A stretch of 5,943 bases of DNA, taken from positions 1 through 5,943 of the forward strand of contig NW_021829506.1 of NCBI RefSeq assembly GCF_006345805.1, given 5' to 3'. Under the pieces are notes generated by a model that was not told where the DNA came from, did no database searches, and saw only the letters and a program-made list of their open reading frames with translations. Positions 1,122-5,645 of this stretch are shown in pieces (positions within the stretch are counted from its first letter, which is position 1; every line of letters begins with the position of its first letter). Source of the DNA: Octopus sinensis (taxonomy: Eukaryota). The position numbers and the translations under genes were made by a program.

Positions 1122-1196
<75 letters not shown>

Positions 1197-1230
1197 TAAA
1201 TAATAATAATAAATAATAATAATAATAATA
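1122..1230. repeat. (AAT)n microsatellite with AAAT interruptions
   Basis: Directly visible. Confidence 0.97.
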
Positions 1231-1783
1231 AATGCCCTGATGCAGTACCAGGCAGTGGCTCTCATGGCTTCTGATCTTAACTGATTGGAAGTGTTATCAT
1301 GTACATTGTTTTGTCTTGGTATAAAAGATGGGCTACAGCAATATTCTGCTCAATACCACATATTTGCTTGTCAGTTGTTTGACCTTAACCAGTTGATCAT
1401 GTCCCTTATGGCTGACGATATGTGCATCTCTGATCACGAGCAGAAGTAGTGGGGGAGCATCATAGCCATGTTTGAGAAGGATTCTTTGGGTTTGAATAAT
1501 TCACCTCTGGAAACATGGGTGTTTCGTTCAACATCCTTAACAAGCCTTATTCAGGGACCTTTTGAGCGGGATGGGTTTACTCGATCTGAAGAAAATTCTA
1601 ACTGGGCTCCACCTGCAAGGACATGTGCTGTTTATCTTGATATGAGATCACCATGTCGCGCACATATGGTTGTGATGCATGTGCCTGGTGTACCCTTATC
1701 AGACGGGTAGTCATGATGGGTATACTGGGCTTCGTATATTTTACCCCAGTGTCACTTCGATGGCATGCTCTGCTCGCTTACTC
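1231..1783 (+). mobile_element. Element X: ~553-bp non-coding interspersed repeat flanked by (AAT)n on both sides; unclassified, orientation tentative
   Basis: Its left ~140 nt recur inverted at 4329-4470 with the same terminus against the microsatellite. Its right ~60 nt recur at 2862-2918, also ending against (AAT)n. No recognisable protein, terminal inverted repeats or Pol III A/B boxes. Confidence 0.8.
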
Positions 1784-1802
1784 AATAATAATAATAATAA
1801 TA

Positions 1803-1860
<58 letters not shown>

Positions 1861-1950
1861 CGACGACGACGACGATGATGATGATGATAATGATAATAAT
1901 GATAATAATAATAATAATAATAATAATAATATAATAATAATAATAATAAA
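1784..1950. repeat. Compound microsatellite (AAT)n-(GAT)n-(GAC)5-(GAT)5-(AAT/GAT)n
   Basis: Directly visible; GAC block at 1859-1873. Confidence 0.97.
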
Positions 1951-2401: not shown

Positions 2402-2695
2402 CATGAATGGGGCTGATTGCTCCCTAGGAACCTCAAAATGACAGAAATTCAAAAGATAGTGCTCATGGAACTGCTCATATCCTATGCAAAATACTTTCTA
2501 TGTAATCTCAAGTTTTAAAACAAACATAATTTTTCTTATGGTTTTAAACATTCTCTAAAACAATACTGTGCACAAAACCAAATATATGGCACCCTAGGCA
2601 TAACACCAACATGAACTTCCTACTTGTTGTCTCTTGAGGTCTCTGGGTGAGACTTGGAGTCAACTTGTACAAATGTAAAGCAAAAGTCAAACATA
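2402..2695 (+). mobile_element. 5'-truncated R4/Dong element, 3' end type B (ORF end + ~190-nt 3' UTR)
   Basis: ATG at 2438 reads MTEIQKIVLM, a 1-nt deletion, then TAHILCKILSM* (stop 2503-2505). Homologous to the inverted copy at 4546-4808. Followed by (AAT)n. Confidence 0.85.
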
Positions 2696-2810: not shown

Positions 2811-2814
<4 letters not shown>

Positions 2815-2864
2815 CATCCCTACAAGAATGCAAAAAATTGTGTTAACTGGAACGACTCACGTAC
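2811..2864 (+). mobile_element. Short R4/Dong ORF-end fragment, type C
   Basis: Reads IPSLQE, a frameshift, then MQKIVLTGTTHV. This is homologous to IQKIALLGTAHI (type A) and IQKIVLMGTAHI (type B). Confidence 0.7.
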
Positions 2865-2918
2865 CGGGCTTCGTGTATTTTACCCCAGTGTCACATTGAT
2901 GGCATGCACTGCTCTCTC
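2862..2918 (+). mobile_element. Right-terminal fragment of element X
   Basis: Matches 1723-1783 (TACCGGGCTTCGTGTATTTTACCCCAGTGTCACATTGATGGCATGCACTGCTCTCTC), with about 6 substitutions and a short terminal indel by eye. Confidence 0.9.
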
Positions 2919-2958
2919 AATAATAATAATGATAATAATAATAATAATAATAATAATG

Positions 2959-3018
<60 letters not shown>
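2919..3018. repeat. (AAT)n with GAT interruptions
   Basis: Directly visible. Confidence 0.97.
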
Positions 3019-3019
3019 T

Positions 3020-3211
3020 ATTTGCTACAATACGCACAAGGCCTGAAATTTTGGAGGAGGGGCCCAGTCAATTACATCGATCCCAGTGTGAAACTGGTTC
3101 TTAATTTATCGACCCTAAAAGGATGAAAGCAAAATCGCCTTCGGCGGAATTTGACCACAGAACGTAAAGACGGGCGAAATACCGCTAAGTATTTTGCCCA
3201 GCATGCTAAAC
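3020..3211 (-). mobile_element. tRNA-derived SINE with Nin/Deu-like central domain and (ATT)n tail; A-box end lost (resembles octopus OR/OK-type SINEs)
   Basis: The minus strand has a mutated B box GTGGTCAAATTCC (3158-3146). It is followed by GCTTTCATCCTTTTAGGGTCGATAAATTAAGAACCAG, which resembles the Nin/Deu core as I recall it (GCCTTTCATCCTTTCGGGGTCGATAAAATGAGTACCAG), and then runs into (ATT)n. The family name is from memory. Confidence 0.72.
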
Positions 3212-3213
3212 AT

Positions 3214-3774
3214 TGAATGATGAAGGAAAAGAGCAGAAAAGAATGTTATCGCAGGTCAAGGGCAATACTCAAGATAGAGCTGAGCGCAAGAAACAGGATC
3301 GAAGCGATCAATACTTTACCCATACCACTCGTGACTTACAGTTTCAATATCGTTAACTGGTCAATTACTGAAATATGTAATCTTGACAGAAAAATACGAA
3401 AACTGTTGACAATGCATAGAATGCACCACCCTAAGGCAGATATAAAACGACTTTATCTGCCAAGAAAAGAGGGAGGCCGTGAACTTTTACAACTGGCAAT
3501 AACAATGAAGATTGCTACAATTGGCCTAGACACCTACCTGAAAAACTCTGAGAACTGGATGTTAAAACTTGTCTCAAAACATGAAAACAAGAAAGCATCA
3601 TACTCAGTAACAAAACAGGCAAAGGAATACCTAAGTGAATTCCGAATACAACAAATTTCGGAATTATACATACAAGAAACAAGCACAGAAAAAGCTAGGC
3701 GCATGAAAACCCGTGCTAAAACTGCTGCCTTAGATATTCTGAATAATAAATGGCAAGAAAATCTCTCTATGGCA
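3214..3774 (+). pseudogene. Internal R4/Dong ORF fragment 1 (RT thumb/post-RT region)
   Basis: ORF 3217-3846 reads KECYRRSRAILKIELSARNRIEAINTLPIPLVTYSFNIVNW...HHPKADIKRLYLPRKEGGRELLQL...KWQE, typical of R4-clade RT C-terminal regions. It is open over ~545 nt but has no 5' or 3' element end. Confidence 0.85.
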
Positions 3775-4328
3775 ATCTGTAATCTTGATAGAAAAATACG
3801 AAAATTGTTGACAATTCATAGAACGCACTCAATAAGACAAATATAGAACGACTTTACAAGTCAAGAGAAGAGGGTGGTTGTGGCCTTTTACAACTGGAAT
3901 TAACTATGTAGATTGTCACAATTGGCCTAAGCACTTACTTGAAAAACTCTGATGGGTGGATGTTAAAACTTGTCTGAAAGCATGAAAACAAGAAAACATC
4001 ATACTCAGTAACAAAACAAGAAATATATAAGAGAATTCCATATACAGAAAATGCCAGAATTTGACGTACTGGAAACATGTACAAAAAAGCTAAGCGTATG
4101 AAAATCCGAGCTGAAACTGATAAATGGCAAGAAAAATTTTTGAATGGCAAATACCCAAAGAGATATAATAATGCCGATGTTGACAAAGCCCTTACCCATC
4201 AATGGTTGTCTTCTGGCCTAAAATCAAAGACAAAAGGGTTTATCATAGCAGCCCAAGATCAACGCCTACCTACAAGAAGCTACCAGGCTAACGTCTTAAA
4301 GAACGACAGTAGCCAAACTTGTGTGTGT
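3775..4328 (+). pseudogene. Internal R4/Dong ORF fragment 2 (diverged repeat of 3373-3774, extending to the start of the CCHC zinc knuckle)
   Basis: Restarts at ICNLDRKIRKLLT. Contains stops (TAG ~3908, TGA ~3975) and frameshifts. Ends KWQEKFLNGKYPKR...WLSSGLKSKTKGFIIAAQDQRLPTRSYQANVLKNDSSQTC, the segment that precedes CX2C in this clade. Confidence 0.85.
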
Positions 4329-4470
4329 AAACAAATCTGTAGTATTGAGCCGAATATTTGCTGAAGCCCATCTTTTGATACCAAAACAAAACAACGTACA
4401 TGATAACACTTCCAATCAGTTAAGATCAGAAGCTACGAGAGCCACTGTCTGGGACTGCATCAGGGCATTT
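4329..4470 (-). mobile_element. Left-terminal fragment of element X, inverted
   Basis: Reverse complement matches 1231-~1370 with about 13 differences in ~137 nt by eye. Same terminus AAATGCCCTGATGCAG against the microsatellite. Confidence 0.92.
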
Positions 4471-4483
4471 ATTATTATTATTA

Positions 4484-4545
<62 letters not shown>
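4471..4545. repeat. (ATT)n
   Basis: Directly visible. Confidence 0.97.
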
Positions 4546-4546
<1 letters not shown>

Positions 4547-4808
4547 TATGTTTGACTTTTGCTTTATATTTGTACAAGTTGGCTCCAAGTCTCACCCAGA
4601 GACCTCAAGAGACAACAGGTTGGAAGTTCATGTTGTTGTTATGCCTAGTGTGCCATATATTTGGGTGGGGGTTTTTTGGTGTTGTACTAATGAATGTCTA
4701 AAAAAAAATTTTTTTAAACCGAAAATTGTTTGTTTTAAACTTTGAGATTACATAGAAAGTATTTTGCGTAGGATATGAGCAGTTCCCATGAGCACTATCT
4801 TTTGAATT
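4546..4808 (-). mobile_element. 5'-truncated R4/Dong element, 3' end type B, inverted copy
   Basis: Minus strand reads IQKIVLMGTAHILRKILSM* (stop 4750-4748). The 3' UTR is homologous to 2506-2695. (AAT)n lies on both sides of the sense strand. Confidence 0.88.
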
Positions 4809-4847
4809 TTATTATTATTATTATTATTATTATAATTATTACTATTA

Positions 4848-4878
<31 letters not shown>

Positions 4879-4880
4879 TA

Positions 4881-4961
<81 letters not shown>

Positions 4962-5030
4962 CTTATTATTGTTGTTGTTATTGTTATTATTATTGTTATT
5001 GTTGTTGTTGTTGTTGTTATTATTATTATA
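4809..5030. repeat. Compound (ATT)n/(ATC)/(GTT)n microsatellite
   Basis: Directly visible. Confidence 0.95.
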
Positions 5031-5156
5031 ACAAGCGCTTCTTTATTTGCCACAAGAACCTCGGATGAACCAGGACATTACAAGCACAAGTTACACAAAG
5101 TCTGGCGGATTATATGAAGTGTTTCTAGGTCTACGAAAGTAGCAGCTGCACCAGTT

Positions 5157-5451: not shown

Positions 5452-5484
<33 letters not shown>

Positions 5485-5645
5485 TCTTCTTCTTTCTCTC
5501 TCTCACACACACACTCTTCTTCTCTCTCTCTCTCTCACACACACACACTCTTCTTCTTTCTCTCTCTCACACACACACTCTTCTTCTTTCTCTCTCTCTC
5601 ACACACACATACACTCTTCTCTCTCTCTCTCTCTCTCTCACACAC
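5452..5645. repeat. Higher-order (CA)n-CTCTTCTTCT-(CT)n repeat, five units
   Basis: ACTCTTCT starts at 5483, 5513, 5547, 5577 and 5613. Confidence 0.92.

Follow-up and report, generated by a model that had tools for sequence, protein, structure and literature searches.

Element X, an (AAT)n-targeted non-autonomous retroposon family of octopods associated with Dong-like LINEs

Retroelement pieces and microsatellites around element X

The window, by which we mean the whole stretch of 5,943 nucleotides of Octopus sinensis DNA that was analysed, contained dense simple repeats throughout its 5.9 kb, and between about 890 and 5030 it formed a nest of retroelement pieces with (AAT)n tracts in between. 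Element X occupied positions 1231..1783 as a full-length unit of 553 bp, delimited by self-BLAST and by an external copy (contig L004), with the + strand as its sense strand. The (AAT)n array upstream of it on the + strand (1122..1230; TRF 1122-1231, period 3 AAT, 35.7 copies) was the target microsatellite of X and was also located directly 3′ of an element with a SINE-type tail ending at 1121. The downstream array on the same strand (1784..1949; TRF rows 1788-1944, 1803-1903 and 1887-1949) started with (AAT)7, continued as (ATG)n/(ACG)n and ended as (AAT)n. These flanks, (AAT)n at 1122-1231 and (AAT)n/(ATG)n/(AAT)n at 1784-1949, agreed with the original prediction of a 553-bp repeat placed between (AAT)n tracts. 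At 1803-1903, within the (AAT)n past X, the unit became (ATG)n, including a brief (ACG)5 run, before it reverted, which is a microsatellite evolving via unit substitution.

Further along the + strand, we found two LINE 3′ fragments, Dong A (381 bp, 1950-2330) and Dong B (291 bp, 2402..2692), and a 105-bp piece, fragment C (2814-2918), which combined a LINE C-terminal remnant with an X-type tail. A SINE (3019 to about 3212, +) was fused to a Dong-like LINE ORF fragment (3211..4328, +) that extended from the RT thumb to the start of the CCHC motif; it was identified by blastx, with matches over 3052-4358 at a depth of 120, and by protein search. The minus strand carried X′, an inverted copy of X 1-139 detected by self-BLAST (4329..4469), an (AAT)n tract immediately upstream of X′ (4470..4545; TRF 4469-4545, TTA unit) and B′, an inverted relative of Dong B (4546-4808). 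Beyond the polarity flip, the minus-strand order was (AAT)n, B′ (4808-4546), (AAT)n and X′ (4469-4329). Each of the seven array elements (X, X′, Dong A, B, B′, C and the SINE-tail element) presented the same arrangement, namely the element in + orientation and then (AAT)n.

Several other features of the window were recorded. The LINE ORF fragment contained an internal tandem duplication of about 400 bp (3372-3724 versus 3774-4119), which is old because the copies are only 81% identical. The element at 888-1121 and the SINE at 3019-3212 had only their last ~55 nt in common (cgaaat..cgc.aag.attttgc.cagc...). This SINE-type tail constituted a fourth kind of 3′ tail in the array, different from the Dong A, B and C tails, and we take it to resemble an abundant octopus tRNA-type SINE; neither ARAGORN nor Rfam detected a tRNA in the SINE-type tail element. 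A unique 123-bp stretch at 5030-5152 (minus strand), located between (ATT)n/(GTT)n and (AGT)n, ended in ...aaagaagcgcttgtt followed by ataataat. It resembles the 3′ terminus of one more element inserted into (AAT)n and matched none of the sequences fetched. At 289-417, a 41-43-bp unit, ATATTTAAAAAACTACCATCGAAG(AT)n, was present three times and followed by (TG)n(TA)n, while 5477-5631 was a compound repeat with a 30-bp period, (CA)n CTCTTCTTCTTT (CT)n, in about 5 copies. Rfam matches to mir-297 and mir-3149 at 364-478 (35 and 24 bits versus gathering values of 90-100) were discarded as artefacts of dinucleotide runs.

Comparison with homologues showed that the LINE pieces of the window belong to one family. 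The homologues carry the RT, then a CCHC motif (CRFC...H...C), RHD, RPD...D...K..KY, which is a restriction-like endonuclease (RLE) signature, and the conserved end ...QKIxLLGTAHILRKxLS. The combination of RT, CCHC and restriction-like endonuclease was found in the homologues of these neighbouring fragments and not in X. The nearest solved structures were R2 proteins, a weak, colinear match (E 0.003-0.005), and a relative in an unrelated assembly from another organism also directly followed an (AAT)n tract. Dong of Bombyx mori was reportedly described by Xiong and Eickbush in 1993. LINEs of the Dong/R4 type target (TAA)n (PMC3774820, PMC4640811), and reports of Dong-R4 LINEs exist for octopus genomes (PMC13282606, PMC9115989), where they are active and are accompanied by an unusual richness in SINE-like repeats and by hundreds of unclassified SINE families (PMC13282606). 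We based the R4/Dong label on the target site, the weak match to R2 structures and these reports of octopus Dong-R4; the window LINEs, putative members of the R4 clade, match the Dong/R4 kind that targets (TAA)n.

Ends, orientation and tail of element X

X is a unit with two defined ends, AATGCC... and ...TTACTC. Its 5′ module (1231..1369, +), which carries a conserved 10-bp hairpin (GCTTCTGATC/GATTGGAAGT), recurred in X′ (X 1-139 versus 4469-4329 on the minus strand, 90.8% identity, E 5e-51, self-BLAST), and the junction with the (AAT)n, ...aataataata followed by aatgccctgatgcag, was nucleotide-identical in both. The 3′ tail module of about 57-61 nt (1723..1783, +) was common to 2862-2918 and was present in L004 too. 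X 493-548 aligned with 2862-2917 on the plus strand (89.3% identity, E 7e-17, self-BLAST), and the terminal sequences, ...ctcgcttactc in X and ...ctgctctctc at 2918, each followed by aataat, had a 4-nt indel as their sole disagreement. The identical 3′ end was seen three times, in X at 1783, at 2918 and in L004. As predicted, both termini recurred at the same position, the 5′ junction being identical and the 3′ ends agreeing apart from the indel.

The Dong B fragments provided a control for the 5′ end. Dong B and B′ start 46 nt apart in the same array and, since B′ begins further in, they are independent 5′-truncated insertions. This pair behaves as expected from random 5′ truncation and thereby makes the exact 5′ end common to X and X′ meaningful. 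The order of B/B′ relative to X/X′ also differs between the blocks, so the block on the right is no copy of the one on the left. All flanks are microsatellite, and the independence of X and X′ would therefore be argued through this indirect B/B′ control.

X′ ended at about position 139 of X, where it meets the interrupted LINE ORF (...TCVCKQ, at which the CCHC motif starts). This breakpoint (4328/4329), which places the LINE ORF against the inverted X′, lies between oppositely oriented blocks; across 3019-4469 the microsatellite switches from (AAT)n, last seen at 2919-3018, to (ATT)n, which occupies 4470-5029 (TRF), and the reciprocal junction was absent from the window. Target-primed reverse transcription (TPRT) is unable to remove the 3′ part of an element, so X′ was truncated by the rearrangement and not by reverse transcription. 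The puzzle that one partial copy keeps each end, raised in the original prediction, thereby disappears.

Fragment C begins with a Dong-like LINE C-terminal coding remnant (2814..2861, +), recognised by HMM and DNA alignment, which encodes IPTRMQKIVLTGTTHV. It is followed by the X-type 3′ tail (2862..2918, +; self-BLAST and alignment), which ends at (AAT)n. The remnant matched an HMM of 13 LINE C-termini (13.4 bits, E 4e-6), and the LINE C-terminal motif that it encodes, RMQKIVLTGTTHV, runs directly into the X tail. The 48 nt upstream of 2862 differ from X and align with the Dong A and B tails, and the reading frame of the LINE breaks off 8 codons ahead of the usual stop. When the tail was read putatively in frame, its ILGFVYF against the LINE end ILRKVLS added no HMM score. 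The match at 2862-2918 is not a second X copy and would be the 3′ end of a 5′-truncated Dong-like LINE fragment, so that, of the two independent copies originally placed at 4470 and 2918, X′ at 4470 was retained and the one at 2918 was reinterpreted as a LINE fragment carrying the X tail. All the LINEs seen are fragments, including this one, in which the tail (X 493-553) follows the remnant at 2814-2918.

The X tail showed no resemblance to the Dong A and B tails when aligned, in line with the earlier remark that the terminal nucleotides of X are unlike the 3′ UTRs of these two elements. Since 2814-2861 encodes the LINE C-terminal motif, X would share its 3′ tail with a third Dong-like 3′ end; the tail seems not to be foreign to Dong, and belongs or was joined to that third end. 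Two readings of fragment C are at hand. Either a third Dong subfamily ends in the tail that X shares, which is the classical SINE/LINE arrangement, or the fragment is a template-switch chimera, in which one RT copied X RNA and then LINE RNA. Both readings say that a Dong-type RT handles X RNA.

The orientation of X, which had been left unresolved, could be assigned from these comparisons, with the + strand as the sense strand. This assignment is supported by the L004 copy, because its 5′ truncation is a TPRT signature, by the joins to LINE sequence in fragment C and in contig L006, since both are in the same sense, and by the uniform orientation of X, X′ and all Dong fragments with respect to the AAT strand.

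Sequence content of X and copies outside the window

X has no pol III head. ARAGORN detected 0 tRNA genes in it, no B box was present at up to 2 mismatches, and A-box-like matches appeared at 1-2 mismatches only and without a paired B box. At E <= 1, Rfam reported no family in X, ribozyme families included, and only spurious CrcZ/mir matches on the repeats. A 12-nt patch resembling the 5′ end of U1 snRNA had no U1 match in Rfam and was taken as chance. X accordingly lacks the tRNA, 5S, 7SL or snRNA head with internal A/B boxes that distinguishes SINEs. Terminal inverted repeats were absent from X, its sole inverted repeat being an internal 11-nt pair, and it presented neither the TIRs of DNA transposons nor the Helitron ends, 5′-TC...CTRR-3′ with a 3′ hairpin.

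X has no coding capacity either. It contained no Pfam domains, its frame-0 translation had no homologue in a word-index protein search, and the deficit of stop codons in frame 0 (four stops) was not significant (P = 0.21 versus shuffles). Coding potential was rejected on this stop count and on the HMMER matches, which were translated copies of the repeat and the unrelated P0125. In all six frames of X, bit scores were negative with an RT HMM; an HMM of the C-terminal 215 aa of the LINE likewise scored negative, versus 108 bits for the Dong A control. LINE RT and the last 215 aa showed no similarity in any frame of three X-like sequences, and blastx on X returned matches only at E > 1. Among the rejected candidates was an RT remnant in the X body, suggested by blastx patches such as WK..GIFQGDSLSPL and a FGLDKCAK-like one (E 1.5-8), for which the RT HMM was negative in every frame, sense and antisense alike; in L004, the two patches stood 55 aa apart in one frame, a spacing incompatible with RT. 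The possibility that X is a decayed LINE 3′ portion was also discarded, as the C-terminal HMMs were negative and 'IRRVVMMG' versus 'QKIVLLG' scored -0.1 bits, which is not significant. X is not LINE-derived as a whole element, as a SIDE would be. Altogether, the HMM, blastx, inverted-repeat and box searches were negative, as the prediction of an element without RT ORF, TIRs or clear A/B boxes implied.

With a strict HDV-like ribozyme descriptor, 0 matches were found at the junction, and 35% of the shuffles gave at least one. A permissive descriptor produced 1453 matches versus a null mean of 1261, no better than shuffles. Neither a promoter nor a 5′-processing element was found in X by Rfam, the HDV-like descriptors and the A/B-box scan. 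The predicted structure of the 5′ and 3′ ends of X was unremarkable (z = -1.08, 0.26, -0.94 and 0.24); that of the tail was not significant (z = -0.94 and 0.24), and the consensus fold of four tails was weak.

Copies beyond the window were sought with a full HMMER scan, using the 80-aa ORF at 1468-1710 as query. The scan returned four translated X-like sequences, plus P0125, an unrelated repeat protein. Two of the four were Octopus bimaculoides entries annotated in UniRef as uncharacterized proteins, A0A0L8FNT1 at 71% identity and A0A0L8IC31 at 66%, which represent two separate loci with X-like ORFs; because of them, the X family is octopod. The translation P0123 led to contigs L004 and L005 (Logan). 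L004 matched X 64-553 with 76% identity over 522 nt (E 1e-101). This copy was preceded by 'atataataat', its 3′ terminus read ...gcgctctc and then aatccatgataataaca, and its insertion point was a short ATAATAA site, so it is a 5′-truncated X copy that sits at a short AAT site and has kept its 3′ end intact. The X-like copy may be flanked by a short duplication (530-551/1049-1075), with agATATAATAAt upstream and tGATAATAAc downstream, and this may represent the duplication of a minimal (TAA)2 target site. A decayed LINE fragment of the same family (YKYLG...KEY..R.R..L.S.LNAKN..AIN) was observed upstream of the copy, at 40-314 of this contig (blastx E 1e-9), so X-like copies and Dong-like fragments are co-located outside the window too.

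The second contig, L006, was reached through P0124 and opens (1-90) with the SINE tail of the window. In it, X 357-538 (79% identity) runs into the LINE RT motif RLLFVDDLKLYGEGES, both having the same orientation; the last 15 nt of X are replaced by RLLFVDDLKLYGEGES..., the YMDD region of the Dong-like LINE family. This contig prompted the idea that the X tail is the RT region preceding YMDD, which was rejected since the RT profile aligned the YMDD segment alone and not the X-like part, making L006 a junction. The similarity between X 1-360 and the upstream part of L006 was not above shuffles. Joins between X sequence and Dong-like LINE sequence in matching orientation were thus seen in two places, 2814-2918 and L006. 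L004 and L006 are separate contigs with different flanks. The copies comprise X, X′, L004, the L006 fragment and the two O. bimaculoides ORFs, with about five X loci seen in total. Scanning metagenome, prokaryote-genome and viral collections for exact patterns yielded either no match or chance matches of 19-27 nt.

Two independent passenger-LINE chimeras with a similar breakpoint were also observed. In the window (3019-3250), the SINE has lost its last 7-17 nt and at about 3212 continues as the 5′-truncated LINE ORF (...gctaaaca followed by ttgaatgatgaaggaaaag), and in L006 (840-942) X-like sequence without its last 15 nt passes into the LINE at the YMDD motif. These chimeras suggest that templates are switched to passenger RNAs at points just upstream of the RNA 3′ ends. 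Template jumps of the R2 RT have been documented in vivo (PMC3414825).

Mobilisation of X and comparison with known systems

X is a real non-autonomous retroposon family of octopods, targeted to (AAT)n and associated with Dong-like LINEs. The L004 copy, the O. bimaculoides ORFs and the two LINE joins support the original proposal of a site-targeted non-autonomous retroposon of Dong. We consider it probable that X RNA is copied into nicked (AAT)n by a Dong-type protein acting in trans, which would recruit it via the shared tail. The X RNA would have the sense of the window + strand, and a Dong/R4-type LINE with a restriction-like endonuclease would reverse-transcribe it at the (AAT)n nick by TPRT. 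The shared tail, that is, the last 57-61 nt, would serve the LINE protein as a handle on X RNA, and a handle of this type, as in common-tail SINE/LINE pairs, is the most likely role for it. The 5′ end of X is precise and therefore calls for a defined transcript start or processing site. Several points speak against this reading: fragment 2814-2918 could be a template-switch chimera, the tail has no significant predicted structure, the searches for a promoter or 5′-processing element were negative, the loci seen number only about five, and the B/B′ control for the independence of X and X′ is indirect.

A possible but unlikely variant holds that X is a SIDE-type, internally deleted Dong-like LINE that keeps its own 5′ UTR and 3′ end. 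X would be co-transcribed through the microsatellite and then trimmed by a self-cleaving ribozyme in the 5′ UTR, cutting exactly at the (TAA)n junction. This would be a special case of trans-mobilisation by a Dong-type protein that additionally explains the precise 5′ end, and it has precedents: in Bombyx Dong an HDV-like ribozyme cuts where the 5′ end meets (TAA)n (PMC3774820), R2 SIDEs combine a 5′ ribozyme with a 3′ end (PMC3414825), and one SIDE derives from CR1 (PMC6740152). The 5′ end exact in two copies and the absence of a pol III head fit it as well. However, the strict HDV-like descriptor had no match, the permissive one did not exceed its shuffles, no Rfam ribozyme family was found at E <= 1, and the X body of ~430 nt has no similarity to the RT or C-terminal regions of the LINE. 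A SIDE origin is thus possible for the two ends of X and does not explain its body.

We also regard as unlikely, although conceivable, that the X tail is not LINE-derived and that 2814-2918 is a template-switch chimera, with X still copied by the Dong RT. In such a case, TPRT on X RNA would have proceeded for ~57 nt, jumped to LINE RNA near the stop codon and halted 48 nt further on, and X would be recruited otherwise, for instance by a (AAU)n 3′ extension pairing with the nicked target. The in vivo template jumps of the R2 RT (PMC3414825) lend weight to this account, as do L006, which joins X lacking its last 15 nt to a 5′-truncated LINE, and the window SINE, which lacks 7-17 nt where it joins a 5′-truncated LINE at about 3212; in addition, the ILGFVYF of the tail contributes nothing to the HMM score over the ILRKVLS of the LINE end. 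In contrast, it needs two rare events, a jump and a very early termination, within 105 nt, and a simple 5′-truncated LINE is more economical. Moreover, the LINE sequence ends 8 codons before the expected stop, where a subfamily-specific end would begin.

A broader proposal, which we hold to be quite doubtful, is that X stands for a class of passengers that have neither a promoter nor a tRNA head and are carried by an RLE-type LINE targeting microsatellites, with a novel 5′ processing. The 5′-processing element would not be recognisable as an HDV-like, hammerhead or twister ribozyme, and the chimeras would record in vivo switching of the Dong RT just upstream of passenger 3′ termini. Finally, that X is not an independent unit, being part of a longer element or a local duplicate whose shared ends came from segmental duplication or microsatellite recombination within the array, is highly improbable: both window copies lie within 3.3 kb of one rearranged array, X′ abuts the rearrangement breakpoint, microsatellite polarity flips between 3018 and 4470 and microsatellite flanks cannot prove copy independence, but L004 and L006 lie on other contigs, where the flanks are different, X-like ORFs occur at two distinct O. 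bimaculoides loci, X and X′ have diverged by 9%, B and B′ differ in truncation point and in order relative to X, and the LINE ORF end of fragment C abuts the tail directly, leaving no room for the X body in that LINE.

The microsatellite array of the window houses several Dong subfamilies together with passengers of at least two kinds, and it offers a concrete, testable pair, the X tail and the Dong-like 3′ end. In the octopus repeat literature, we did not find the pairing of LINE to passenger worked out. X may already be in a repeat library, because hundreds of unclassified octopus SINE families have been reported (PMC13282606). If X lacks a pol III head and yet has a nucleotide-exact 5′ end, it gives a handle on how passengers of RLE-type LINEs are transcribed and trimmed; otherwise, this would be routine repeat annotation.

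Among known systems, common-tail SINE/LINE pairs with 'stringent' recognition were described by Ohshima and Okada, as cited in PMC9115989. Like them, X is short, non-coding and multi-copy, with 5′-truncated copies that retain the 3′ end; its 3′ end, which may be a tail shared with a partner LINE, recurs on a LINE fragment, and its target preference is that of the LINE. Unlike them, X has no tRNA, 5S, 7SL or snRNA head and no A/B boxes, so it is not a SINE in the strict pol III sense, and its probable partner is a site-specific LINE of the RLE type, not of the APE type. SIDEs include the R2 SIDEs and R2/R1 hybrid SIDEs of Drosophila (PMC3414825) and Persaeus, a CR1 SIDE (PMC6740152). Similarly to R2 SIDEs, X is a probable non-autonomous passenger of a site-specific LINE of the R2 group, located at the target of that LINE, with a precise 5′ end, a putative LINE-type 3′ end and apparent template-jump chimeras alongside. 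R2 SIDEs are made of LINE parts only, a 5′ ribozyme and a 3′ UTR, whereas X has a 430-nt body without LINE similarity and no HDV-like ribozyme was found in it; the comparison with R2-derived SIDEs made in the original prediction breaks down at this body. X shares with Dong of Bombyx mori and the R4 clade the insertion into (TAA)n/(AAT)n in a single, fixed orientation relative to the repeat strand, and the LINE fragments around it have the R2-group RT, CCHC and RLE layout; unlike Dong, X encodes nothing. The 'unclassified SINE' and unknown repeats of octopus (PMC13282606) come from the same host group as X, which has X-like ORFs in O. bimaculoides, and X resembles them as short, abundant-type repeat DNA located beside a tRNA-type SINE tail in arrays. 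As a genomic parasite, X is of an ordinary kind; what is unusual about it is its head.
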